Shown piece by piece: positions 441-58,765 of a stretch of DNA of 64,000 bases; positions within the stretch are counted from its first letter, which is position 1, and the number at the start of each line of letters is the position of its first letter. Origin of the DNA: Octopus sinensis. Taxonomy: Eukaryota. The notes under the pieces were generated by a model. It did no database searches, was not told the DNA's origin, and saw only the letters and a program-made list of their open reading frames with translations. The DNA is taken from the NCBI RefSeq assembly GCF_006345805.1, contig NC_042998.1, forward strand, positions 41,664,001-41,728,000. The letters are read 5' to 3'. The translations under genes were made by a program, and so were the position numbers.

Positions 441-1348
441 TCGGTTGAGAATGAAGGACTTCAACCAAACTCAAGATTATTAAAAACAAAATGAACAAAA
501 CCTGTTTTTCATCTTTCAAATCAGTCAGATTTAATGGTTACACACACATACATAAGGATAATGTCAAAGAGAAACATTCATTCCTCTTTAAATCATATCT
601 TTGAAACTATTAAATGATAAATGACCATTATTCTCAAACAGTGGTTATTTTTGTTTTTTCAATCTTGATTGTACAAGATCCAGTAGCTACAGTAAAGTTA
701 GCAACCTCACAAATATATTCATCTGAATATATAGCCTTGCAATTTGTTTCATTGTCATTAACTAATTCAGCAAACATTTTACAAATATTAGTTTAAAACT
801 TCTTATAAAAAGAAAATTACAAAAATAGATTGTTTTATGTAAAGGAGAAAAAGGAAATATTTGATAGAGATAAGACAGAAGTAGAAGCAGTTGTAATAAT
901 TTTACTTTTATAATGTCTACATTTATCTAAATTTCTGTTGTGTCTGATAAGTCACAAAGGAGATCATCAATCAACATTTCAGTGTTGTCTACAATGACTG
1001 CTTTATAGTAACAAGATTACTCTGATAAAGCAGAATCATCTTGTCTTTTGTATGTTTAGGATTAAATGTCTGTTTTTGCCTTCAAGACATGTTATATAGC
1101 AGGGAAACATGGCTGTTTTCTAGCAAGTTGAGCAACTATGTAGATGTTGTCCTCAGTAAATGAAAGCATAGTTCTGTTTGTTCTTTTATATGTTATATCA
1201 TACTGGCCTTGAAATGTAACATGATGAAAGGTTTATTTTAAATGTGCACATTTTAAAATAGACAGTCTTGTATCATAGAAACAAGTGTCTCAGACAGATT
1301 GGTTGTGTAAGGGTTAAAGTAATTTTCTTTTCTTTATTCCTTTTTCAG

Positions 1349-1460
1349 GAGCAAGTGTTTGACTATATTTTTAACCATTTGGGTATTGATACTGAAAGTT
1401 GTGTGGATCATCCCATTGTCATGTCTGAAGCTCTGAGTAATCCAAATTATTGCAGACAAC
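1349..1460 (+). CDS. ACTR5: ACTR5 exon A ([24 protein letters not shown]...CRQ)
   Basis: tttttcag acceptor, gtaaga donor, phase 0 to 1. Confidence 0.95.
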
Positions 1461-4400
1461 GTAAGAAATATTTGATTAATCAATTTATTATTTTAATATC
1501 TGTGGTTAGGAAGCTTGCTTCCTAGCCATATGGTTTCAGGTTCAGTCCCATGCTTGGCACCTTGGGCAAGTGTCTTCTGCTATAGCCTCGTAATTGAATT
1601 TGGTAGGCAGAAGTTATCATCGGCTTTTTTTTTCATATTACCAATTTAAATTATGTTTTTTAAAAATTGTATTTTATTTAGAGGAAAAGCTATGAAGGCA
1701 GCCTATTATTCAGTAATATTAATTCTAATTGCTAAAGCTTAGAGTGACAGAGGAAAAGAGACAGGTTTTGCACAGAATTTAAGTAAATAGTTGCATTAAG
1801 TTTTTCTGGGTTACTGCATGTGTTTCTACACATACATCATAACAATAGTTCACTAACATAAATAACTTTTAACATATTAACACAAGTCAACACCCATAAA
1901 ACTTATTCTAATGAATCCAAAAGAGTTGCAGTTCATTCATTATAAACCTCTTGGCAAAAAAAAACTGGCATGTAAAAAGCACTATTCAAACATGATCGAT
2001 GCCAGGCCCACCTGACTAGCCCCTGTGCTGGTGGCATGTAAAAAGCACGCACTACACTCTCGGAGTGGTTGGCATTAGGAAGGGTATCCAGCTGTAGAAA
2101 CATTGGAAGATCAGATTGAAACCTGGTGCAGCTGCTGGCTCTACAGACTTCACTCAAACCGTCCAACACATGTCAGCATGGAAAACGGACGTTAAATGAT
2201 GATGATTGAAGCATTGCATCAGTTGTGCTGGGTCTTTGAATTTCTTTGTGCATTTTTAGCTAGCTAAACTATCATAAAGGGTGTTTGTATTGGAGAGCAA
2301 ACTGTTGGTTTCTTGTTTATAACAAATTTGTAATGATATTTTTGTTTTCATTCCAGAAATGTCTGAGTTGTTGTTTGAATGTTACCATGTCCCTAAAGTT
2401 GCTTATGGCAATGATGCATTATTCAGTTTGTACAAAAATCATCCAAAACCAGGTATTCTCATTATTCATTTAAAATCCTTTCAAATATGTCATTAACTTT
2501 TTTTTTTGTTACAATTTTTCTTCATCAGGTAAATTGGAAAAAAAGACAGACGTGTTCGTTTGTATCCATCTCTCAAATGAAAATAATAGGAAATTTGGAA
2601 AATTGTTTTTAAAATAGGTGTATCCTGCATTGAATAGCTTAGGGTGGATTTAATTTGTGAAATCTTTCTATTTATGAATTTTAGTTCTATTTTTGCTGAG
2701 CTGATAGCCTCAACTACAGATAAGGATCTCTAGTGATGGGAATAATTCCTTAAAAAAAGGAAACGTGAATGATGCACATGTTGACAAACAAGAAAAAGTA
2801 AAATATCAGAAAGTTATAAAAGTTTGCAAATTGTTGATAATCTTTCTCATGTTAACTCCTGTTATTTTCCTTCTATTGCCCCAGACATTGAACAGCATTA
2901 TAACAGCTTTTATCGTCTACATGTTAAATGAAATCACTTTTTTAGATAATGTAATTCCTTCCTTTACTCATCTTCTCTTTACATTATGCAAGCCCAATTT
3001 TACATTTTTCACTTGACACAGACAAAACTGTTTTTTTTAGTTAATAAATCCCTAGATATGTTTTATATTATTAATTGTATCAGTCCATATCAGCCAAATG
3101 TCCTTTGGCACATTTTACTTTCTTAAAGGAAAAACACAATCTGATCTGAGACAAATATAGAATGGTCAGAACTGTTAAATTTGATAATGTCTGTCTATCT
3201 GGGGCTTAACGACAATCTTTGTATTGATAATTTTCCATACAGATGTTAAATTTTAAAATTTACTCTATACATTAGCAAGAGTTTTCTTTTTCTTTTATTA
3301 TCAGAATCAGCAAATGCTTTAATAGTTGACTGTGGTTATCAAACAACTCATGTCATTCCCTTTATAAATGGTCAAATTGTTGCTGAGAATTGTCGCCGTC
3401 TAAATTTAGGTGGTTTACATCTTGATTCATTCCTACACAGACTTCTTCAGTTAAAATATCCCAATCATTTGGCTGCAATAACTCTTAGCCGTGCTGAAGT
3501 AAGTATAATTCTTGAAAATTTTATCAGAATTTGCATTTTTCTTTGCAAACTGAACATATTGTTAAAGCAGTTTATATTTTTTCTTAATGTATGCTGGATT
3601 CAGTTTTTTTCTTTTTCCTACCAGCTCTTATTGCCTTCCATATTAATCAACTGAAAGACTTTTGGCTTATTGGCCAGAAAGCTGGGATTAAGGACTAATG
3701 AAACATAATAAAGACAGACTCACAGCAAGTGTAAAGAAATGAGCTAATGGATCTTCAATTAAATCATTAGCAGATTGCAAGGGAGCAAATAAAAAAAATT
3801 CTTGGTATTAGTCAAGTTTGACGAAGTACACTGTATGCTTCCCAGATTCACCACAAGATACAGTTACTGAGGGAAATCATTTTTTCCATTACGTACACAC
3901 CTTTAAGCATTGCATTCAAAAACTTTCTATTTTTGCCAAACTCTTTGATCTTCCTTTCTTTACAAAGATCTGGTGTGTCCTATTTCCAAGTAGTGTAACA
4001 TCACTGAGTATACAGGTGTCTTGCCATGAATTGCAACATCTCAAATGGAGATGGTTGTGGTAATCTTTTTAATCTCCTATCTCTCTTTTTTGATCCAGTT
4101 TCCATAGTCAGATTTGAGATTTCTATAGTTCATATCTTTAAGAATTCTGGCAAAGTGAAGTCGTTGCCTGCCATTACCAATGTTGTTTAGCCATGTAGGC
4201 TCTCTTTAATGTACTTGGTTTAGTTGTCACCTACATGCTTCCTTCAGTACATTGACTGGCTAGTTATTTCTAATTGAACAATTTAATTCAATTACACTTC
4301 AATCTATTACATGCAATCTTGACACTTCATCTTTTTGCTAGAGCAAGAATTTTTCCATACAAATATCAAAGGAAGTCTAGTACCAAGCTCTACATATGTA

Positions 4401-7400
4401 TGAATAAAATAACTAAAACCCTCAGAAGCTACCACAAGGACATAAAATCTGACTTCACATCCAAAGCATTACTAAAACTCCATTTGAAAACTAGCTTTCT
4501 TTTTCAGAGCAATTGCTAACTTATAACAAAGCTCATGACTACTGCTGCATATTCAAATATTTAGTACTGTATTAAAAACAAACTGACGAAAGTTCCAACA
4601 TAATGACTTCTAATCCAGAGATAGCCATTGTCTCTTTTCTGAACTAGCATATTCTCTTGATTCAGCTCACTTCTGTTTGTTGTCATTCCCCCCAGATTTT
4701 CACACAAATCATTGCTTCCACAACTGCAGCACTCTAGAATAATTTGGCCATCTGCTTAGAGCCACCCATCAATCTGGGAGAACCTTCAAATGTCACAGTG
4801 GCTGCCATCTTGACAAGATACTTGAAGAAATTTCTGGGAGAACAAGTGCTATAAGCTTGTTCTAGGTGAAATTTTAGATCAGGCTGGAGGTGTCATTGGC
4901 TCGCATTCATTAAAAAAATGCTATGTTTGTTAGTGAATACATCGTATTGTCATTAAAAAATACTATATTTATTAGTGTGAAAGATACTGTTCAATCATCT
5001 AATAGAATGAAGATTTAGCTCTAAATAATGTAGTAGATACATACACATATGCACTAAAAAAGAAAAGAAATGGCAAAGAATTTTAAAAACAATATTTAAT
5101 TAACTATGTTAATACAGATACTGTACATTTTTGTTTTCTTTTAATAAGACAAATATGTCTGGGTTGAAATCTACTTAAAATGGAAATATACTACAAAGAC
5201 AATGAAATTAATCAACACTTTAGTATAAAAAATTAAGTCACGGAAAACCCATTACAGACGTTAAAGAAATATGAATTGGATTTGTAAATTTTCCAATGAG
5301 ACTGAATTATAGGCAGAGTTTATCTCCATCTCAATATGCCTTTACTTACGAGTACCTGACAAGTTGCTACTCTTACTGGCTGATGAATAAGCAACAGGCA
5401 TACCCTGGCTGTTGTAGGTGTACATTGGAGCACTGGGGTTGTTCTTCACTTGCATGCATGTCATTGGGTTTCCAACCATTGGCATGTTAGAAGCATTTGC
5501 TGCTGACATCATATAGACATCTGAATACTTTAGGTCTTTGTCTAAGTATTTGTGTTGCTGTGAGTAGGGCAATTGGCTATAGTTTGCTCCTGACATATTC
5601 ATTGCTTGCATCTGTTGTACTGCAGCAGCTCCATACATCTGATACTGGGGCAACGGTGCAGAACTCATCTGCATGAGGTTTGGATAGGTAGAATTCTGAA
5701 GTCCAACAGACATCATACCTAGAATAAGAAATAAATAAATTTGTGTACATTTGTCTATGAATAAAAAAAAAGTGGAGCAGAGTTTGTAAATATCTACATA
5801 GTACTCTACCTAATATTTTCTAAATACAAGAAAATTTTGCCTGAATAGAGGATATCCAGAAGAAAATTAGAGCCAAAAATTTTCTCAAATTATAATTGAA
5901 AGTGTAACAAGAAAAAACTGAAGTATTTATTACACAACTAAACAATCATTCATGAAATATAATTAATGTCTATAGTGTACATAAACTGTATATGCATGAT
6001 GAATTAAAAAAATATTTTTTTTAAATTCCGGATTCACATCCAATAGGTGTGGTACAAATTTAACCTACATATTCAGATGATTTACAACTTTAATCTGTTG
6101 TCGCCAATATATAAATTTCTTCTGATGTAAGTTGTAAATACACCTGAAATATAAACACTAACACAACACAAGAGGTGATATCACTGGAAATTTTGTCAAG
6201 TATATACACATATTGTGCCCTTCTGATTGATTTTGCTTTTGCAAATATAGTCTACTTTATTTCTTATGTATGATTGTTAATTCAGTGAATATCATTTTTG
6301 TGAACCATGTGCATTTGTATAAGTTTATATTTTTGTATAAGTTGTGTATTAGTTTTATATTTTGCAATTTTATGCTTTTCTATGGAAAAGTATAAAAACG
6401 CAGAAAACAAGCAAAACGTAAAAAAAAAAAAGAAAGATACTTATCTGTTATGTGTGTGCGATATCTCATCTGTGTGGAAAGTGATAAAGCACAATATACA
6501 CTGCAAAACAACATCCATGATAAACAATGAAAGAAAACATTGCTACTTGGAGAAGCTCACCTCTTTTTGAGAGGTTTTACTAGCATTTTTTTATAAGTTT
6601 ACTTCTTTAATCTCACTTTTGGATGTTTTTTTTTTTAATGAAAAAGTATCTTTATTTCATATAAAGTCCTAGGGCAACTTTTAGAGTAATATTTTAAAAA
6701 TACTTTTATTCAAAGCTATGAAAAAAATTGTGTAATTCATTAAAATCATTCAAGCATCTGAATTAGTTACATATTTCTTATTTTACTATGGTTCCTGATT
6801 AACTAATTATAACATAATGAAAACCTTTAATTATCTAAGCTTATAACAGCATCAAAATTCTTATCTCAAAAAAAGAAAAAATGTAATTGAATTACAATTT
6901 AGTTTTCTAATACTTTAACATGAAAATCCTACAGAAGCCAAATTTCCATTGTTCAGTTTACCATGATTCTATTTCTATGAATTTCCAAAAAATAATTGGT
7001 TATTTACATTTTTTAAAAATTAAGCTAACACTAAAAAAGAAAAAAAATTTTTTAACATAGTGAAGAAGGAATTTTATCACAAGTATATTTGAGATTTTAA
7101 TGATGTAAAAAATATAATTGGAGGATTTACTCATATTTTTCAGAAATAATTTCTGACAAACATCAATATATTTATAGACTTACTTGAAATAAAGTTAAAT
7201 AAATTTAAAATTAAAAATATTTATCACAAGATAAAATGGCTAATTTTTTTTTTTTTTATGTAATCTAATGCATTCTAATGTTGAAAACAAATGTTTTCAT
7301 ATAATTAATATTGAAAAAATGCAGTCAAAACTGAGAATATTGTTAATCAAATATTTAATAGCTTAATTTTTTTTCTTCTTCAATAAATCTCTGAAAATTG

Positions 7401-10400
7401 GTCAAAAAAAAAAAAAAACTTTATAAACCATTAAAAGCTATTGGATTTGGTCAAAATGTTTTCACAATGGCTTCACTAAGAAAGTATTTCAAAATTTAGA
7501 AACTTAAACATACCTGGTGTCTGATTAACAAACATGCTTTGCTGACCATAAGGGTAACCAGTATTTACACTGATACCTTGTTGAGAACCGCTACCATACA
7601 TGATTCCTGGAAGAGTGACTGCTACCCCCTGTGCTGGCTGCAACACCATACCGGAACCTACTGACCAGTCTTGTGATTTAGTGACATATTGTTTTGTTGC
7701 ATCATATGCTTTTGATGTATCATAACCTTTTGACATTTTTCCGGTTCAGTTTCCAAACTTGCTGAGTTTAGGTTCCTTTCTGATATTCAAATCCTTTCAG
7801 AACTTGAAATTTCAAAGAGACAAAGAAAAAGAAAAGAAAATTATAAGCAGTGACAAGTTTTTGTTACTGTAAATGTACAATGTCTTTGTTATGCAATTGA
7901 TACTTGGTTTGCTTCTATATTAACCTCTTAAAATAAATTTCAGTCTTGAGCTGATTTTTTTTTAATGATTTCTACATGTGTAGTAGAGTGTAATTAACCA
8001 AATTTTCCCTTACTACAGGAGTTAGTACAACACCACACACATATGGCAGTAAACTACCATGAAGAGCTAGCAAAATGGGCTGACTATGAGTATTATGAAG
8101 CTAATGTTCATAAAATCCAATTGCCATTCACTCTGGTAAGTTATCTTACCTTTAAATTTATATCATTAATGCTACTATGATTTGAATGGTCATATGAAGT
8201 AATTAATTCTTGAAGTTCTTTATGAAGTAGGATTTCATAAATTGTTTAAGACCTGGTATAAAGATGAAAATTCAAATTGATGAAATTAAAACTTATTTAT
8301 GCCAATTAAATGTTAAGCAAATTCTATGAAGTTAACTTGATTTTCTTTTATTGGGATTACTGCTCTCCAATTTTTAATCATTACCATTTGTATAAGATTT
8401 TTAATGAACATTTATAACCAACCAACATCATCAATTTATTAGTTTTAGCAGTCACTTTATATTATGCATAATACAAATAAATAGCTAGAATGACAGAATT
8501 CTAGTTTAAACACCTCATACAACCTTATGTGGTGGTGTGGGAGATTTTCATAAAATTTCTGCAAATTTGTGTTCTACAAATGAGAATTCATACGATTATG
8601 CAAAAATATTTTTTTGGAGTATGATTTAAGGGCAATTTAGCTGTTATTTTTAGCACATATCACAACCACCTGATACTGACCTCGTGTCTTTGTCACTCTG
8701 ACACGTATGTTTTTCAATATTTTTCTCCATATGAACACATTTAATGGGATGCTGATGCACCTAAAGATGCTATATTGCCGGGATTTAAGCAAAAAATTCG
8801 GACTATTCATATTTTTTTAAAAATTCAAAAAGTGGGACCTTTAGGATTTAAAAAGGAATTTTTATCTTTCCATAATCGTATGAATGTATTCTTGTGTGCA
8901 GAACAAAAATTCACTAAGACTTTCTGAAAATTCCAAAAAATAAAAAAGTTATGAGGGGTTATATGGGGTGCTTAAACCGGAATTTCGCCGCTAAAATAAC
9001 TTCAATATGACAAAGACGTAAAAAGAAAACCAACAACTTAGCAGTGAGAAATGCAAAAGTCCAGTCTACAAATGAAAAGCCAATGCATTGAAGGGAGTTC
9101 ATTAAACATGATTTATACATTAATATAGAGACAGTAATACAGATGAGACTCAAGATAAAATTAGCTCGAAAGAAGCGAAATTGTGTATTAGAATTAGCAA
9201 AGAAAGGACGGCTCGGGTTTGCAAAAGTGTTAGTGATATTAATAACAAAACAAACGTTTCGAGTATCAGTTAAAGAAACTGAATGTCTAAGGATGTTAGG
9301 GAAAAAAAATCTAAAGCAGTTTATATTTGCTATGAACCTTGCGAAGTGTAGTGACTACATGCAATGTTTTTATGGCAGAGATAAACACTTACAAAACTTA
9401 CACTTATTTACAAAACAAATACGTTTTACTTTTTTTTTCGGTACAAACTGTAAATCTGTTATTTAGTTAATTACTGAGAATTAGACGCTGTCTTGTGAGA
9501 TTCATGCTGAAAATAATGATGGAGTGGAGAGACAATTTTGTAGAATTAATATCAACTATAACGTGATAAGTGGATACTCGTATTTTTTTTTTTTAATTTG
9601 GACAGAGGAAAAATTAGAGGAAATTGATCTAAAATCCACTCATTTGAAATAAGAATCGAAAATGAAGATAAGGATGTAGTATATATGCAATTGATTTTGG
9701 ATCTTACAAATAATTACAAGTTAATTTGTAGTGATAAGCAGAAATGCAGAGCTAAATGAAAACAAGCTCACATGTGGTGTAAACGGCATCATATTCCACT
9801 TCAAGGGAGCTGGTAATTTTAAGGCATATTTATGATGGGCTGAGGTTAAGAAATAAACCGTCATGTTTGTAATCAAATAAAAAAAAAGTCTTATTTACGA
9901 TACGAGAAAACGAAAAGGTAAATTTTTACCATTACACCAGTCTCATTTTGAAGGTGTGGTTTACATAAATAATGAGTGATTTCCGACTATTTTGATGATC
10001 AGTCGCTCAAAATACATCAAAAGCATACATTTACCCAAAATACGACGGGTATAAATTTCACTTTCAAAACCAAACGAGTACAATTGTAAATCCATACCGT
10101 TTAAATGTTTTCTATAGTTCTATAGTGTTTATATCTATGTGAGACACAGGTTCAGATGCTAGTCTGATAAGGGGTAACTTCCCGGTAAATTTTTATTACA
10201 CTCGTCTCATTTTGAGGGGTGGTTTACCTAAAAGAACGAATAATTTCCGGCGCTTCTGATGATCAGAAAGATGGGAAAATTACGGGTGTAATTGTAAAAA
10301 ATTTATCAACGAAAATGAAGTTTTATAAAGTCGAATCCATAAAGAAAAAGCATTCTGTAAAGACCTTCATTGAAAAATTAATTTATGTACTATTTAGCTC

Positions 10401-13400
10401 TTTCAATCCAACTTCCATCATTAAATACATTCCACAACCCTCTTCATAATAGCGAGTTCTGATTCAATTATCTTTTAAATTTGACTCTTTAAAAACTGGA
10501 TTCATTTCATAACTGAAATAATTTACTAATTTTTTTTTTTTAAATAAAAATATCAACCACTGAAGGGGTCACGATTGAGTGTTATATAAAACAGTAAAGT
10601 TACACTTCATCTTTTTTAAAATCCCTTCCTATTTTTGCTTTGTTCTAAAAATTGACGTTTGAAGAACTTTTGCTAATTAAACAAATATAACTCAAAAATT
10701 TTTGCTTTTTAAACAAATTTAACCCAAAAAATTTTTGTTATTTAAACAAATTTCACTAAAAAATTTTTACTTATATAAATGAAGTAATTTTGTTCTGTAT
10801 TTATGTTTAAAAAATCCAAGATATTGCATCAATTCTTTAGTTGAAACTGTTTTTCTTTTTAACTATCAAAAGAAATGTGTTTTTTTTATCGTCATTCTAA
10901 TATTTAATTTTGATATAGTTGAGCATTAGTTGACAGAAGCATCTCTCCATTTTTGCGGATTGAGTGGGATGGATGATATGGGCCTCGTTAAATATGAGTC
11001 CACCTAAAGAATTTACAATAAATGGTTAAAAAAAAAAAAAGGTTTAAAACATTTTAGCTATATATTGAAATTAATTTCGGTATTTGGAAGTTTTAAAGAG
11101 AGAGGCTGTAAAATCTTATTAATAACAGATAAAAATAATGCACGTCAACCAAGCCAGCCATTCTGTGAGTTCACTGAATGGGAAGAATGTCGAGGGAATA
11201 TCGAAATTATTTCGAAAACAAAAATTTAGTAGGTATACTTCGATATTTCCTCACATGGTGATGGAGCTTTAATAAATTAGAGCTAATATTAGATTTTTGG
11301 TCCACAGTTCTATGTATATTACCTTTTTAAATCGATTTAAAATAAAAATAATGGCCATTAGAATTTGGAAAAAGCCATTGTAGGATTGTAGCAGCAACGA
11401 TGTATATTTTAGGAAAAGGACGTCAGTAAATGATTTTATACTGTGCTATTCATTATATTTTATTTCCAAAATGTCAAGGAAATCACTTTAAAATCAAGAA
11501 AATGAAATTAAAACCCCCTTTCTGATGTTTAAAACGCCCATGACTAATCCCTTCGTTGAAAGGCGTTAGAACCAAATTACCAGAACATGGAAAGAAAAGA
11601 CCTGATGGAGAAACCCCAATTCCGTTAACAGAATAAGAAGAAACCTTACTTTATATAAATATATATTTTCCACTTAATTGTGAGTAGCAGCAGTCTTGAT
11701 ACGAATGATGGAAGTTTTGTGATGGCACACAAGCTTGTTGAAGAAATGTCAATTATTTGCTTCTAAAGGCTAGCAAGTCAATGAATGATTCACATACATA
11801 CGCGCAGCAATGGCTTCTTCCTTCACTGCTGCTAAGATCAACATTATCGAACTTCTTTTTTAAAATTGTGTATGTGTGTAGGTGTGTATGTGTGTGCGCG
11901 TGTGTCCGCGCGCGTGCGTGCGGACGTGCGTGCGAGCGTGCGTGCATGCATATACGTATGTATGTATGTACGTATGTATGTAATTTTTCACACAGTTACT
12001 CAAGGGTCGGGAGTTTCGTGAAATCAGGCACGCACGCACACATAAACATCTCTTGGAAATTTGTTTTCCAAGAATTGTGGTTCAATCTGAAACCGTGTGT
12101 TGTTGAAACTAATATTATTATATTTCGGAAATAGTCGATAAAAACTGATTAGTGTTTATAGTGTTTATTACGATGACTCTACCTAAATTAAAACATAAAC
12201 AATTGTTATAATCCTTTTATTCATTTCAGCCATGTGGCTGCGGTCATCCTGGAGCTATATATATATATAAAGCTGTTGTATTCGAAACACGCGCAGACCG
12301 TTTTATATATTATTTATTTGATTTTTTTGGCCTAAATAAATTTGAATTGTTTCCTCGTGGAAGGACTTTATACGATTCAAATTGAATTTGCAGTTTGGTA
12401 CTAGAATATTATCAACTCTCTAGATTTTATTCCATTATTAGTCATAGTAAACTAGATTCTCATTTAAATTTCACCTTATAATCAGCACTAAAGTCTGTTT
12501 GATAAATGTAAACACACGCATATGTAAGCCATTGGATTAAATGCTTTGTATACTAAATCCTCATTTTTTATTTCGTTTATAAAGATAGATTCAGTCGTTT
12601 ATTTTCATTTTCAGTGCCCTATTTTTTTTCTCTACATTACATTATCCTGATCAGAGTCGTTCCATAACGACCATCACGTTTTTTTATATTTCATATATCA
12701 GGAGATTTATTACCCAGTGCGCGAAAGATTAATAAACAAAGTAGTCCATATGTTCCGTGTACGCGATAAGATTTCCGTATCCCTTTTTTAGTTAGCGTCC
12801 GAGATCATGGCTTTAACGGTTTTTATTATAATTCTCAAAATAAAATATTTTGTTTTTTCTAATTGAACAGAAGGGAACTAGCTTGTCGCTGTTTATAGTT
12901 AGATCGAAAAAGATTCGCTTTTGTTTACAACAAAATTCAAATCAGTAAAAAATACATATGGCTCTCCCCCCACCTCAACCCTTGTGATTTTCCTCATAGA
13001 GATGAACTTGCATCGAGCTGCTGAGCCTGCAGCATGGTTTCGATTCTCGGTTATGGCCATTTTATATAAGTAGTGCCGCCGCTACCCACACATGCAAATG
13101 ATGAATTACTTAAAATCAAGTACAACTCCAAAATAAAAGCTTGAATAATTAAACAATGGCTTCTTTAATGAATATTTAAAAAAAAACTATCTTTATTTCT
13201 TATTAAGTATTGTAGGGGAAGTCAAAATTATTTATTACTACTATTGTAAAATATATTCATTTGAAGAATTAAAAAATGTGAAAGAACAATATGCGAACAT
13301 CAAATGTTAGGTCTTTGTGGTGACAGTGTAAAATCAAGCGATATGTCATGAATATTATATTAATTATCCAGTCATATTGAAATACCATTCCTTCAAATTT

Positions 13401-23400: not shown

Positions 23401-26400
23401 ACGACAACGCAAAATAGACATGGCCAAACGAAGGACACTAGCCTCTCAGCAAAGGATGAAAATTATCTCCCAACTCGCACAAAGTAGGTTTTATTTTCTG
23501 ATTGTTATTTAAAATAGTTGTTTTTTCTCTCTGCACTGATTCTTTGTAATGTATTTTATCTTAGTAATTGCAGTTGTCACCTATGCAGTATGACATCTTG
23601 TGTTGAGCAGGCAGCATATATGCCACATTTTTGTCCATTTAATGGCAAATGTATCACAAAAGCATTTACGCACTCAGGAAAAATAACACCAGCAGATGGT
23701 ATAGAAAAAGAAGTATATTGGGCTCATGGAAAATACATTTAAAATTAGACATCGCCTTCACTCCTTCTATTGCATTCAGACACAGAATTAAATCTACCTA
23801 TCTCAGTACTCTTAGAATAGGCTTCTCCTATCGTTGACTCCTCCCCTGTCTGTTATCATCATCATCATCGTTTAACGTCCGTTTTCCGCGCTAGCACGGG
23901 TTGGACAGTTCAACCGGGGTCTGGGAAGCCAGGGGCTGCACCAGGCTCCAGTCTGATCTGGCAGAGTTTCTACAGCTGGATGCCCTTCCTAACGCCAACC
24001 ACTCCGCGAGTGTAGTGGGTGCTTTTTACGTGCCACCTGCACAGGTGCCAGGGGGGTCCGGCATCGGCCACAATCGGTTGGAGCTTTTAACGTGCCACCA
24101 GCACGGAAGCCAGCCAAGGCGGCGCTGACAACGGCCACGTTCAGGAGGTGCTTTTTATGTACCACCGGCACTGGAGCCAGTCGAGGCAGCGCTGGCATCG
24201 GCCACGTTCGGACGGTGCTTTTTATGTGCCACTGGCACACAAGCCAGTCGAGGCGGCGCTGCATCGGCCACGTTTGGATGGTGCTTTTTATGTGCTACTG
24301 GCACAGAAGCCAGTTGAGGCGGCGCTGCTTTTTATGTGCCACCGGCACAGGTATCACAACTAGTATTTCCATTGATTTTTATTTCGATGTTCATGTTCAT
24401 GACTCAACAGGTCTCCTCAAGCACAGCGGGACGTTCTGGAATCCAGGGTACTTTGAATGGGCAGGGGCTATGCGGAACTGGTGCAGGAAGCAGCCCGGGT
24501 CTTTGCAGTCACAGCATATCTCCAGAGATCTCGGTCCTTCGCCATTGCCTCAGTGAAGCCCAACGCTCTGAGGTCATGCTTGACTACCTCATCCCATGTC
24601 TTCCTGGGTCTACCTCTCCCCCTGATACCTTCAACTGTTTGGGAGTGGCACTTCTTCACACATCTCTCCTCATCCATCCGCAGTACATGACCATACCATC
24701 GCAAGCGTCGCTCTTGCACACCACATCTGATGCTTCTTATGTCCAGCATTTCTCTCAGGGTGCTTACACTCTGTCGTGCATGCACACTGACATTACACAT
24801 CCAGCGGATCATACTAGCTTAATTTCTTTCAAGTCTATGCATGTCCTCTGCAGTCACAGCCCATGTTTCACTACCGTGAAGCATGGCAGTTCGCACACAT
24901 GCATCATACAACCTACCTTTCACTCTGAGCGAGAGACCCTTTGTCGCCAGTAGGGGTAGGAGCTTTCTGAACTTTGCCCAGGCTATTCGTATTCTAGTGG
25001 TGATACTCTCTGAGCATCCACCTCCACTACTAACTTGGTCACCCAGGTAGCGGAAACTATCAACTACTTCTAGTTTCTCCCCCTGGAGTGTGATGGAATC
25101 TGTTTTCTGAGTGTCTGTGGTGTCTATTGTCCCTGTGCATCTGCCGCACATGAAAGCTATCTTATCAGTTAATTTCCCTTTGATGTTGCTGCACCTCTTA
25201 TGCGTCCATAGCTTACATTGGGTGCATCTTATGGAGTTTCTACCTACACCTTTCCTACAGATCGAGCAGGGCCACCTGCCCGATGGGGTGTGTGCTGAGT
25301 TCGCCTTTCTGCTTACTATAACTTTGGTCTTTGCTACATTTACTCTAAGGCCCTTTGATTCTAACCCTTGCTTCCACACCCGAAATTTCTTTTCTAGTTC
25401 CGGTAGTGATTCTGCTATGAGAGCCAGGTCATCAGCATAGAGGAGCTCCCAGGGGCATCCTGTTTTGAATTCCTCTGTTATTGCCTGGAGGACTATGATG
25501 AATAAAAGGGGACTGAGCGCTGAGCCTTGGTGTACACCTACTTCTACCCGGAATTCTTCACTATATTCGTTGCCAATCCTAACCTTACTGACAGCCTCTC
25601 TGTATAGAGCCTGTACAGCCCTTATTAGCCATTCGTCAATCTCCAGTTTCCATATCGACCACCAGATAAGGGATCGGGGAACCCTGTCAAAGGCTTTCTC
25701 CAAGTCCACAAAAGCTATGTAGAGGGGTTTATCTTTAGCTAGGTACTTCTCCTGTAGTTGTCGGACCAGGAATAATATAGCATCAGTGGTGCTTCTACCC
25801 GGCACAAAACCGAACTGCATCTCATCTAAGCAAATTCTCTCCCTAATGAGATGGGTTATGACCCTCTCTGTGACCTTCATCACCTGATCCAACAGTTTAA
25901 TACCCCTGTAGTTATTTCTATCTAGAGCATCACTCTTACCCTTGTAGCAGTTGACTATGGTGCTGCTACGCCAGTCATTGGGTATGACTCCATTATGAAC
26001 TACCTGGTTTACAATGCGGGTGACTAGGCCATAGCCCACGTAGCCAGCTGTTTTAAGCATCTCAGCAGTGATTCCTGATGGGCCGGGGGCTTTACCTGGT
26101 TTCATATCCTTAATTGCCTTAACTACAAGGGAGCTGTCTATTCAGATAGCTGGTCCCTCTACTGGGTCAACATTTGGCAGGCTCTCCTCCTCCCATTCAT
26201 TCTCCTCATTCAGCAGTCTTTCATAATGGCTTCTCCAAGCCTCTTTCTTTTCACCAACATTAAAAGCAAGTGCCCCATCATCCATGCGGACACATTTCTC
26301 TCCTGTAACATCACTATTTTCTCTCACACACTGTCTGGTAATCCGAAATACCTCAGCTCTTTGGTCCTCACGTCGCTGGACATTGGCAAACTTCTTCTTT

Positions 26401-29400
26401 TCTGCTACATCTTTGGCTATGTATACCTGCCGCCCAGCCTCCCTTTTGGCTACCTGGTACAGTTCCCTGCTACCCCCATCCCTCCAGGCTTTCCAGGCCT
26501 GTCTCTTTGCACTAATGGCTTTGTCTACTGCACTATTCCACCACCACGTAACTCTAGGTCTGGAAGGGACTTTGCACCATCCACAGACTTGGTCTGTGGC
26601 ACTCAGCAAGCTGTCCCGTAGGAATTCCCAGCTACCTTCTATGTTCGACGTCTGAAGCTCCTCCTCCCTCTCATCAAATTTCTTGATGAGGATGTCCCTA
26701 AATCTCTGACCATGTGAAGTGTTCTTTAGCTTCCAAATCCTTCTTTTCTGGATTGGTTTGTTTCTTGGAGTCCTTCTGGCCTCAAGCTTAAAGTCACTGA
26801 TGATTAGCCTATGCCGAGGGATACATTCTTCACCTGGGAGGGTCTTTGTATTTAAGAGCAACCCTGCATCCTGCTGTCTGGTGAGGATGAAGTCTATTTG
26901 GCTAGCGGAGTCTCCTGACTGATAGGTTATAAGGTGGCAGTCAGGCTTCCTGAAGTTAGTGTTGCAGATTAAAAGGTTACATGCATCACAGAATTTCAGT
27001 AGTCTAGTTCCCTCATCATTTCTGGTGCCAATACCATGGCCACTGTGTACCCCAGTGAAGATACTTGATTCCCGTCCAACATGCCCATTAAAGTCTCCAC
27101 CCACAAAGATGAGGTCCTTGCCACTAGTCTTTGAGGTAGCCTGTAGAAGGGTATCATAAAAGTGGTCCTTCTGATCATTTGATAGTCCCGCTTGTGGGGC
27201 ATAGGCAGAGATAATCATAGCTGTGCCACTCTGTAGGACTAACCTGAGCTTAAGCACTCTATCGCAAACCCTGACAACCTCTATGACCTTATCCACCCAT
27301 TTCTCCGCAAGGAGAATGCCTACACCCCCTACACCATCCATGTTACCTTGCCAGAAGACTTTATACCTATGTGCCTTGCCCGTGAGGACCCTAGCTGAAG
27401 CACCTCTCCATCTTACCTCTTGTATGCAGCATACATCAACCCGTCTTCTCTCAAGCATCTCTACAATCTCACTAGACCTACCTTTCAATGTACCAACATT
27501 GACAGTGTCAACTCTGAAAACTGGGAAGGAGATGTGGGGAGGAGGGGAGCAATTCAGCGCCTGAAAAGAAGAGGGTTGTTGTGGTGGTGATCGTTTTTTA
27601 GGCATTTTTCATCTGATCTCTCTTCCAACCTGACAACATTCAAGCATTTAGGCATGATAAGGTTGTGGCCCCTGCCGTAGGCAGGAGCTGGTGTCAGCAG
27701 CGTTGTAAGCATAAACATTAAGGTCATTGATGATGTAGATGTAAGCTCTGTGGCAGAAATACTGAAATTCTAGGTGTTAGTAGCATTCTAAGCAAGCATT
27801 ATGGTCACTGAGTAATGTAGTTTAAGCAACGTAGCAGAAACATGGATATTCTAGTGTTGGGGGTGGGGTTCCAGCCGAGAGAAAAATTTTTGGTTGCATT
27901 GCGGCGGGGAAGGGTTCCAGCAGAGAGAAGAGAGAGAGAGGGAGAGAAAGTGGGGGGGGATTGTGTAGGTAATATAGGGGAGGACCAGTAGGGAGGGTTG
28001 GGGTAAGGAGAAACGATGACAGGTAGGGTTGGTGGCAGGTTCTAGACAGAATGAAACGTAGGATATCACGAGTGGGGGAGGGGACTGGAAGGAGATAGCC
28101 GGTTGAGGCAGTGACAGATTTCAAAACAGGAGGAAACGTAAGATAACTGGTTAAGTGGGACGGTTGATGAGCTGCTTCTATCTTGGGGGAGAGGGGCAGG
28201 GGTAGGGGTAATACATAGTGAAATAGCATATTGAGGAGGAGGGGTTGGAGGAATAGATACATGTAATGGTGGTGGGAGAAGGGATATCCGGTGTAGATGG
28301 TGTAAACAGAGTGTTCTCCGGTATTGGTGGTGGGGGTGGGAAAGGGCGGGCGCACCGCGAATGGCGAAGATTTTGATTGGGGACAATAGTGAGAAGAATT
28401 AAGCAATCGGGGTTGAAGAAGGTAACAGAGAAACGAACGAATTAACTTCATACCGGGGGGGTTAAAAAAATTAAAGGATTATATTTTGTGGGGAATCGTA
28501 TCAACATTTAGCTCATGAAAGAAAATAACAAGCAGATTTGTGAATAGATTCAAACATTTAAGCGTTAGCGGCAAATGTATGTATGTAGTACGAGGATCGG
28601 AAGAAATGAAATGAGAATTCTTAGCTTGCTTTGGACATCGCTGTGGTCGAAGAAAGAATGAGTAGAAGAGGAGCACAAGGTGATATTTAAGTAGACTGAC
28701 CGGAAGAAGTGAGTTGGAGAAAGACAGAAGTTTTGATTGAGGACAGTAATGGCGAAGATTTATGTTCAGCATTAATCATTTCTTTTTGTTATCCCTTTCT
28801 CCACCTTCCAACTTTATCATATACTTTTCACTATATTCTCTTTTTGTTTTTTTTTGTTTTTTTCCTGTTTTAACTTCTTTCCTTATGATGAATCTGCAAA
28901 TGTTGCAGCGACCAGACTTAGTTCTTAGGACCATATTCCTCACTGTGAATATAGTGTGTGTGTGTGATTGCAATGTCAGCTGTAAAAAAGTGTTGGTGGT
29001 GGGGCATGGAAATTAAATAAATCTTTTGTTATAGATTGTCTCAACATACTGAAACCTACAACAGATCATTACAAAACTTGCATTGAGACCAGTAAAAAGT
29101 GTGTTAAATAATTATTTGAAAGATCAAAAAAAATATCCTGAAACAAATAGTATTGAATTATTTTTTGTAATTATCTGTCGGCTTGAAGGTCATGAAAAGT
29201 AAATTGTAAATTCATATATAAAAAAATTCTCTTCATCTTTCAGATAACAAAAAACAAAAGGATGATAATTTTGGACAGAATGATGCTGATTGGGATGTGT
29301 ACAAGGAAATTGTGAGTATTATTCTGGAAGAAAATGAAATTTTCACAGACATCTTTTACTTGTTTTAGCTATTAGACTGAAGCCATGCTGGGGCACCACT

Positions 29401-52819: not shown

Positions 52820-53163
<344 letters not shown>

Positions 53164-53479
53164 TGTGGCTCTTTGGTAAGAAACTTGGTTCTGAAGCACA
53201 TCATCCTGGATTCTGTACCACTGTGTGGTAACTTGGCATGTGTCTTCTGCTGTAGCCTCAGACCAACCAAAGCCATGTGAGTGGATTTCGTAGACAGAAA
53301 CTGAAAGAAATCAATTATATATATACTAGCATTATGACCCGGCATTGCCGGGTCATAGTGCTAGTGCATGTATATATGTGTACATATTACATGTACAACT
53401 ATATATATACATCTACACATAAAATACAAAGTTATATCTTGATATCGCTAGTGATAACAATACTCAAAATATATAACAG

Positions 53480-57530: not shown

Positions 57531-57669
57531 TCAACAAAATACTGATAGTTATTGGACGCAGTTTTTTCAACGAGACCCTACAAAAAATAATCTACATTGT
57601 ATCTAATATGTGCATACCACCAATGATTGAGCAGAAATTAAAAATAATCATGGTTTTGAAAAATTTAGT

Positions 57670-57726
57670 TTGTATTACCACTATATATACTTATATATAT
57701 ATACTTATATATATATACTATATATA

Positions 57727-57822
<96 letters not shown>

Positions 57823-58026
57823 GTATATATATATGTATATATATACACACACACACACATATATATACACACACACACATATATATATACACACACACAC
57901 ATATATATACACACACATATATACACACACACACATATACATATATATATATACACACACACACACCACACACACACACATATACATATATATATATACA
58001 CAACACACACACACACACACATATAC

Positions 58027-58059
<33 letters not shown>

Positions 58060-58135
58060 TATACATATATATATATACACACACACACACACATATATAT
58101 ACATATATATACACACACACACACATATATATATA
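57670..58135. repeat. Compound (TA)n/(CA)n microsatellite
   Basis: Direct reading. Confidence 0.97.
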
Positions 58136-58765
58136 CTGTTGCGTCCATGCTGCCAACAAAGCACGCGGAGTTCTGTTTTTGATTCAACGGTCATTCAGAA
58201 TGCTCACAGCAGCCATATTCCTACCGCTCTATGTCACACTGGTGAGACCCATATTGGAGTACGGGATTCAAGCCTCTTCTCCTAATCTCCTCAAAGACAT
58301 ACATCATCTTGAAAGAGTCCAGAAGCTGGCTACCCGCATGGTTCTTGGTCTCAAGCATTTGTCTTATGAAGAAAGGCTGAAGACGCGCGACCTTTATTCT
58401 CTAGAAAAACGCTGCCGCCGTGGTGATCTCATTCTTGCTCACAACATCATAAGCGGAAAGTGTAACCTCTCGAAAGAGCTGTTCTTCACTCCTGCTCCAG
58501 AGCGTCGGCTGCAGGTCACTCTGAAAAGTTCTATCTGCGACGATTTCATCTCAATCGAAGGAGAGGGGCTTTCTCCGTCTGGGTTGCGGGTCCGTGGAAT
58601 AAGCTGCCGGACGAGATAGTGAAGATGCCAACGACCGCTCGGTTCAAAGTCTCTCTTGACCAGAAATGGCCTGAACTCTTTGCATGAACACCACCCTGTA
58701 CATAACTCCATGTCCCCCTACATGGCCTTGTTTTTGCTTTTTGAGCCAAAAAATTAACTTAACTT
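58136..58765 (+). mobile_element. CR1/L2-type LINE 3' fragment
   Basis: LYVTLVRPILEYG..HLERVQKLATRMV..LSYEERL..RRGDLI..FSVRVAGPWNKLP. Confidence 0.9.

Follow-up and report, generated by a model that had tools for sequence, protein, structure and literature searches.

The minus strand of a 64,000-nucleotide (nt) stretch of the Octopus sinensis genome (assembly GCF_006345805.1, contig NC_042998.1, positions 41,664,001 to 41,728,000; hereafter the window, with positions counted from its first letter) carries what is best explained, with good confidence, as an already annotated three-exon protein-coding gene that is restricted to cephalopods, interleaved with the oppositely oriented ACTR5 gene, and endowed with a product of 199 residues that is predicted to be disordered. 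The gene model itself is known, RefSeq and GenBank holding the identical protein: exact look-up returned XP_029651071.1 and XP_036368445.1 (O. sinensis LOC115224337), XP_014776310.1 and XP_052832376.1 (O. bimaculoides LOC106873457) and the UniRef entry A0A6P7TQ41, all of the identical entries being labelled 'uncharacterized protein'. The Argonauta hians orthologue, GAB1597308.1, is also annotated (199 amino acids (aa), 84% identical), and in the Octopus and Argonauta genomes the gene is called antisense inside an Actin-family (ACTR5) gene (715 aa in O. bimaculoides and Argonauta). Thus, the gene is not hidden, as an initial annotation made from the letters of the window had proposed. A literature search on the gene and protein identifiers, and on the Pfam family DUF6198 considered below, found no mention of them in the library covered.

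As a gene model, nothing is added here. What is added is context: the gene emerges as a strongly constrained, clade-restricted orphan with a predicted disordered product in which Tyr, Met, Gln and Ser abound, the place that it occupies in ACTR5, antisense and interleaved, has been retained in two deeply separated cephalopod lineages, and a conserved block in its second intron provides a concrete testable hypothesis. Nested genes are common, as are lineage-specific disordered proteins, so a specialist should find little surprise in this; cephalopod-specific genes are nevertheless candidates for clade-specific biology, which makes a conserved orphan a reasonable target for functional work.

The letters of the window match the O. 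sinensis chromosome record CM016860.1 (GCA_006345805.1) with 100% identity. The minus strand of the window was read directly between positions 4900 and 7900, and open reading frames (ORFs) were taken from an ORF listing. The initial annotation had joined two of these ORFs through a GT donor at 7513 and an AG acceptor at 5719, both in phase 1, into a coding sequence (CDS) of 199 codons, and the sequence agrees base for base. More specifically, the upstream exon ends in ACACCAG at 7514, directly before GTATGT (GT at 7513-7512), the acceptor TTATTCTAG (also read as TTTCTTATTCTAG) has its AG at 5720-5719, and the downstream exon restarts at 5718 (GT ATG ATG), so that 7736..7514 and 5718..5342 together make 600 nt, that is 199 codons plus TAA, with a split codon G/GT encoding Gly. 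The in-frame stop claimed upstream of the ATG is a TGA at 7748-7746, four codons 5' of the start, and the AG at 7804-7803 further upstream is preceded by a long pyrimidine run. The GC content of the exons is 42-43% vs 24% for intron 2. The minus-strand AATAAA noted at 4973-4968 is there as well. Note that neither ORF length nor the AATAAA is significant alone, the window containing 25 stop-to-stop frames of 124 aa or more and about 1.5 AATAAA per kb on the minus strand; the case for the gene therefore rests on the annotation, on spliced contigs and on selection.

Three independent Logan contigs (L009-L011, from runs SRR16213284-6), which are intronless and carry Illumina adapter at their ends, contain an unbroken 600-nt ORF encoding a protein identical to the 199-aa prediction. 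They differ from O. sinensis at nine synonymous sites and from O. bimaculoides at five, which makes a third Octopus species their source. Aligned to the window, they fall into three blocks with GT-AG boundaries, 11867-11652, 7805-7509 and 5720-5132, the first of which, corresponding to exon 1, aligns at 93-94%. The exon 2/3 junction in these contigs, CAGACACCAG/GTATGATGTC, is exactly the predicted one, and the exon 1/2 junction reads ATATAAA/TTCT.AAAGG, so that the acceptor at 7803 is used. The non-coding first exon that the initial annotation had postulated upstream of this acceptor is thereby found at about 11866..11650, joined to 7802. Its start is only approximate, because the 5' ends of L009 and L010 diverge both from the window and from each other at a microsatellite next to exon 1; a GC-rich (GCAC/GCGC/CACA)n microsatellite, at about 11870-11950 on the minus strand, abuts the 5' end of this exon. 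At the other extremity, the true 3' end of the gene probably lies near 4950: O. sinensis and O. bimaculoides are 97% identical over 5131-4950, then 94% identical with many gaps downstream, a drop compatible with use of the candidate AATAAA at 4973-4968 without proving it.

In O. bimaculoides (L008) and Argonauta (L006), the donor and acceptor positions and the phase are unchanged. The exons of O. sinensis and O. bimaculoides share about 99% identity (99.1% for the coding part of exon 2, 98.9% for that of exon 3, 98.6% for the observed 3' untranslated region (UTR)) vs about 93-96% for introns, and the non-coding exon 1 is 99.5% identical vs 88-94% in its flanks. Ratios of non-synonymous to synonymous divergence (dN/dS), calculated by the Nei-Gojobori method, are 0 for the Octopus species pairs, which display 5-9 synonymous and no non-synonymous differences; on the three-species Octopus tree, the pairwise counts correspond to about 10 substitutions, 10/10 of them synonymous. 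The ratio is 0.11-0.12 between Octopus and Argonauta (dS 0.54-0.61). As judged from these alignments, the reading frame is under strong purifying selection. Stops, frameshifts and a dN/dS near 1 were looked for in the orthologues and none was encountered; together with the spliced transcripts, ratios between 0 and 0.12 uphold the proposal that this is a real protein-coding gene.

To characterize the host gene, candidate plus-strand exons were collected by comparing ORF fragments of the window with the Argonauta locus, and were then concatenated. The resulting sequence matches human Arp5 (PDB 6hts_H and 9ge5_J) over residues 111-341 with an E value of about 1e-80 (9e-81), fungal Arp5 with 1e-33 to 1e-38 and actins with only 1e-12; by sequence, the host gene is ACTR5, which encodes the INO80 subunit Arp5. 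The CDS, together with exons 2 and 3, lies in host intron 3499..8018, with exon 1 in the following host intron. The antisense orientation within ACTR5 and the location of the CDS in a single intron, as first described, are thus borne out, while nesting of the whole transcription unit in that intron is not: host exon 8019..8135 falls within antisense intron 1, so that the two genes are interleaved rather than strictly nested.

A second cluster of 11 proteins (P0003, P0005, P0009 and others), 46-52% identical to the Octopus protein, extends the comparison beyond octopods. Its sources are the intronless transcript contigs L001-L005 and L013-L017 and a 378-kb contig of the European Nucleotide Archive (ENA), L012; L013-L017 come from Joint Genome Institute (JGI) samples 3300018952 and 3300018694 and from runs ERR1712042/142. 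Comparison of these transcripts with the genomic contig joins the predicted exons in the same way, and L001 and L013-L017 have the same three-exon layout as the octopus gene. The coding exons of L012 are split at the same codon as in octopus (NQTPG/gtagg and tgcag/GTATGATG) and are flanked by the same pair of Arp5 exons, which lie on the other strand. A short non-coding exon of L012, at about 2846-2900, is located beyond the Arp5 exon 6352-6501, so that the interleaving is the same as in octopus and, here too, the whole unit is not contained in one host intron. Frame, intron phase, start and stop are all preserved at 46% protein identity. The dN/dS ratio is 0.06 between two species of the second lineage (Dec1 and Dec2) and about 0.1 across the octopod and second lineages, for which dS is saturated. 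Given this saturation, and given that the Arp5 exon of the second lineage is 87% identical to that of Octopus, vs 64% for two other animal loci, we read the second lineage as a non-octopod cephalopod, probably decapodiform. The ERR1712xxx runs and the JGI samples are presumably Tara Oceans metatranscriptomes, a provenance that would fit planktonic squid. Separately, L013 and L014 contain a 3' UTR that is 3.3 kb or longer (739-4038) and aligns to L012 10442-13378, the octopus 3' UTR seen so far being about 0.2-0.4 kb.

Animal genomes commonly contain nested and overlapping gene pairs (PMC11694760, PMC13309782, PMC3786989), which makes the arrangement itself ordinary. Like mammalian pairs (PMC11694760) and Drosophila 2mit, which lies in an intron of timeless2 (PMC3786989), the gene studied here is an independent opposite-strand coding gene lying within introns; it differs from those host/nested pairs in that the antisense unit spans two host introns and has a host exon in its own intron.

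The encoded protein is best read, from sequence-based prediction, as an intrinsically disordered, low-complexity, cephalopod-restricted protein with a high content of Tyr, Met, Gln and Ser. Its composition is biased (S 13.6%, Q 10.6%, M 10.1%, G 8.5%, Y 8.5%; QNSGY together 48%), with no Glu, a single Arg and a pI (isoelectric point) of about 9.2, and this composition is kept in the distant second lineage. Sequence prediction finds neither a signal peptide nor a membrane segment in the 199-aa protein: the maximum KD19 hydropathy is 1.0, which leaves no hydrophobic segment, and the N-terminus is hydrophilic. AlphaFold2, run on a three-sequence alignment, gives a mean predicted local distance difference test (pLDDT) score of 37.5, a predicted template modelling (pTM) score of 0.11 and no secondary structure. 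In the most distant comparison, conservation is uneven, invariant residues comprising 13 of 17 Tyr, 15 of 21 Gln, 7 of 10 Lys and 12 of 20 Met, vs 92 of 199 residues overall (Fisher tests, p = 0.006 for Tyr and Met together, p = 0.01 for Tyr alone). The conserved motifs are MSKGY..K.YD.SKQY, PGMMS.G, P.PQYQ.Y, QQ.KYLDKD, VGN...CM, MY.Y.S.GM.VAY and a terminal G.RK.

From this composition, the predicted lack of a fold and the pattern of conservation, we tentatively propose a disordered multivalent scaffold or adaptor, a mechanism whose chances we put at somewhat less than even. The gene would have its own promoter region 5' of exon 1, inside an ACTR5 intron, and its product would be disordered, would reside inside the cell and would make weak multivalent contacts by means of its conserved Tyr and Met 'stickers' or of short linear motifs. 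Neither an enzymatic nor a secreted role is envisaged; the protein would instead be a scaffold or an adaptor, perhaps one that forms condensates. FET proteins and the QPGY region of SS18 contain Tyr-rich low-complexity regions, and yeast Pbp1/ataxin-2 contains a Met-rich low-complexity domain. Compared with these domains, the octopus protein has a similar Ser/Gln/Gly/Tyr-rich disordered character and 10% Met, and its Tyr and Met residues are preferentially conserved. It differs from them in being free-standing, without an RNA-binding or other domain, in containing more Ala, Val and Lys, and in displaying no detectable sequence homology in the whole-database searches, and condensates are only proposed for it.

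Several points weigh against the overall picture. The complementary DNA (cDNA) contigs derive from a related Octopus species and not from O. sinensis itself, so exon 1 and the interleaving are placed in this window through a conserved donor and sequence identities of 93-99.5%. Inference likewise underlies the taxon given to the second lineage. As for the protein, a three-sequence alignment makes low AlphaFold confidence expected even for a small fold, Q and N together amount to only about 17%, well below classical prion domains, and the proposed function is drawn only from composition, from the way residues are conserved and from the fact that no structure is predicted.

The main alternative mechanism, which we consider unlikely, is that a small domain, either folded or induced by binding, exists in the protein, for instance around QQ[HQ]KYLDKD...MM.AAN...VGN...CM, and makes it a specific subunit or ligand. 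Residues 126-167 or so are indeed the most conserved and less repetitive, they contain the sole Cys and most of the charged residues, and the AlphaFold alignment is too shallow to exclude a fold. Set against this, no secondary structure is predicted anywhere, no similarity to PDB or Pfam entries is found, and a 4-residue indel separates the two lineages inside that very region.

Another possibility, improbable in our view, is that the locus mainly regulates ACTR5 by antisense transcriptional interference, the protein being secondary. The interleaved layout, with a host exon in intron 1, is kept in both cephalopod lineages, and interference between host and nested genes is documented in other animals (PMC11694760, PMC13309782); nesting is common, however, usually without a known regulatory role, and purifying selection is strong on the amino-acid sequence itself. 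We rank a regulatory role towards ACTR5 as secondary because of this constraint on the amino-acid sequence.

Membership of a known family, as a diverged DUF6198 protein, a reflectin or another Met- or Tyr-rich cephalopod structural protein, is very improbable. The only Pfam hit, to DUF6198, scores 14.2 bits (E = 0.034) vs a cut-off of 27 bits and is obtained with one of three orthologues. In the Pfam, NCBIfam and PDB searches of the protein and of its alignment, the matches to DUF6198, UmoA, IS607 and a PHA granule protein were sub-threshold and composition-like, and we discarded them; the NCBIfam and PDB sequence searches returned noise only. Reflectins are cephalopod-specific, disordered and Met- and Tyr-rich; the protein studied here likewise appears to be cephalopod-restricted, has much Met and Tyr and is predicted to be disordered. 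Whereas reflectins nearly lack Ala, Ile, Leu and Lys, the 199-aa protein contains Ala, Val, Lys, Leu and Thr in quantity (A 16, K 10, L 9) and a single Arg, the three orthologues contain neither the reflectin motif (regular expression [M/F]-D-x5-M-D-x5-M-D) nor a single MD dipeptide, and no reflectin was retrieved alongside it in profile searches. An exhaustive profile search with the three orthologues against 1.84 billion representatives found only two cephalopod clusters, and an alignment search of 5.8 billion clusters only the three known cephalopod ones, with no other family returned. The earlier statement that the gene could not be assigned to any family therefore holds for Pfam, NCBIfam, PDB and these two whole-database searches.

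The same searches, which found cephalopod sequences only, agree with the suggestion that the gene is lineage-restricted. Two non-cephalopod ACTR5 loci from ENA assemblies (L018 and L019) keep the same intron position, and their orthologous intron, which contains a 2.7-kb tandem repeat or is 0.7 kb long, displays no similarity to the 199-aa protein. Judging from these comparisons, the gene appears to be cephalopod-restricted, no relative being detected elsewhere, with the qualification that Nautilus was not specifically examined. A pattern search of metagenome contigs matched 78 patterns and confirmed none; it missed the known JGI contigs as well, probably because the octopus query is only 46% identical to them. 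In L018, the tandem repeat (10500-12640) fills the orthologous intron and gives rise to repetitive minus-strand ORFs (VVLWKIHCNLVYSN), and a 701-aa ORF upstream, with HTH_animal and DUF8422 domains, is probably a transposon.

Finally, it is hardly credible that the two ORFs are a chance pair or that the transcript is an untranslated non-coding antisense RNA of ACTR5: frames as long as these are no rarity in the window and the coding case is built on sequence and transcripts, but substitutions within Octopus are exclusively synonymous, dN/dS is as low as 0.12 against Argonauta and 0.06 within the second lineage, frame, phase, start and stop survive extensive protein divergence, and the ATG has an A at -3.

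Intron 2 of the gene contains a 101-nt block that is identical in O. sinensis and Argonauta hians. The surrounding segment, 6395-6575, is 91% identical to Argonauta over 181 nt and 99.4% identical to O. bimaculoides, whereas the rest of intron 2 is unalignable with Argonauta; the block is better conserved than the CDS (83% nucleotide identity with Argonauta) and than the synonymous sites of the same gene, whose divergence between Octopus and Argonauta is about 0.5. The window has a single copy of the block and L012 has none. Its conservation in all six frames rules out an ordinary coding exon. On the strand of the gene, the block runs through a pyrimidine tract and an AG into a candidate 60-nt cassette exon (6500..6441), most of which it covers: TTGTTTTGCAG ends in CAG and is followed by 60 nt and then by GTATCT. 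If spliced in, the candidate cassette would introduce an in-frame TGA, and the sequence through this stop is identical in Argonauta. The block thus looks like a stop-containing ('poison') cassette exon; a DNA-level enhancer or another element is equally possible. A structured RNA, microRNA or small nucleolar RNA was considered and rejected, folding being no better than that of shuffled sequences on either strand (z = -0.4 and -0.2), and an Rfam search of the block gave no credible match, with weak AT-rich noise from microRNA models beside it. Exact look-ups found neither the inclusion product nor a control read-through product in the protein collection, a look-up of the 124-aa exon-3 ORF found nothing either, and an exact DNA scan of metagenome and metatranscriptome contigs for the block gave no match, a result that is uninformative on inclusion.

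Splicing-factor genes carry ultraconserved 'poison' cassette exons. The octopus block resembles these in its extreme intronic conservation, bounded by AG...GT and extending into the flanks, and in its in-frame stop; it differs in that the cassette donor is weak (TAA/GTATCT), in that the protein is not a known RNA-binding protein and in that inclusion is only a candidate event. One might speculate that the disordered protein autoregulates its own mRNA through this ultraconserved cassette by splicing-coupled decay, an idea to which we give little weight; if true, it would imply a role of the protein in nuclear RNA processing or in condensates. The coordinates of the block, of the antisense gene and of the flanking host exons are collected in Table 1.

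Table 1. Features of the antisense gene and of its ACTR5 host in the window
Feature	Position	Strand	Details
ACTR5 exon	3305..3498	+	Directly 5' of the host intron holding the CDS; AAITLSRAE/gtaagt
AATAAA, candidate poly(A) signal	4968..4973	-	Sequence match
Exon 3	5132..5718	-	377 nt of CDS, stop TAA 5344-5342, then at least 210 nt of 3' UTR in cDNA contigs
ORF	5342..5716	-	124 aa (ORF listing)
Intron 2, 1795 nt, GT..AG	5719..7513	-	Same position and phase in O. bimaculoides, Argonauta hians and L012
101-nt block	6453..6553	-	Identical in O. sinensis and Argonauta hians; within intron 2
ORF	7476..7736	-	86 aa (ORF listing)
Exon 2	7514..7802	-	66 nt of 5' UTR, ATG 7736-7734, 223 nt of CDS, phase 1 end
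Intron 1, 3847 nt	7803..11649	-	Contains ACTR5 exon 8019-8135 of the opposite strand; likewise in L012
ACTR5 exon	8019..8135	+	Next host exon, inside antisense intron 1; 100% identical in O. bimaculoides
Exon 1, non-coding	about 11866..11650	-	Contigs L009-L011; donor GTAAGG, GT at 11649-11648

Elsewhere in the window, two adjacent minus-strand ORFs of 487 and 428 aa (24819-27605) look by eye like a non-long-terminal-repeat (non-LTR) retrotransposon of the long interspersed nuclear element (LINE) type, with an endonuclease-like followed by a reverse-transcriptase-like part and a jump in GC content to 46-53% over about 24000-28500; both the window and the Argonauta locus contain further, related fragments. 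On the plus strand, 48622-48692 matches the Rfam transfer RNA (tRNA) model with 34.5 bits (threshold 29) while ARAGORN finds no tRNA in the window, and this segment is probably a tRNA-derived repeat or pseudogene. The (TA/CA/TATG)n microsatellites at 52821-53345 and 57608-58285 yield spurious ORFs of 150-225 aa on both strands.

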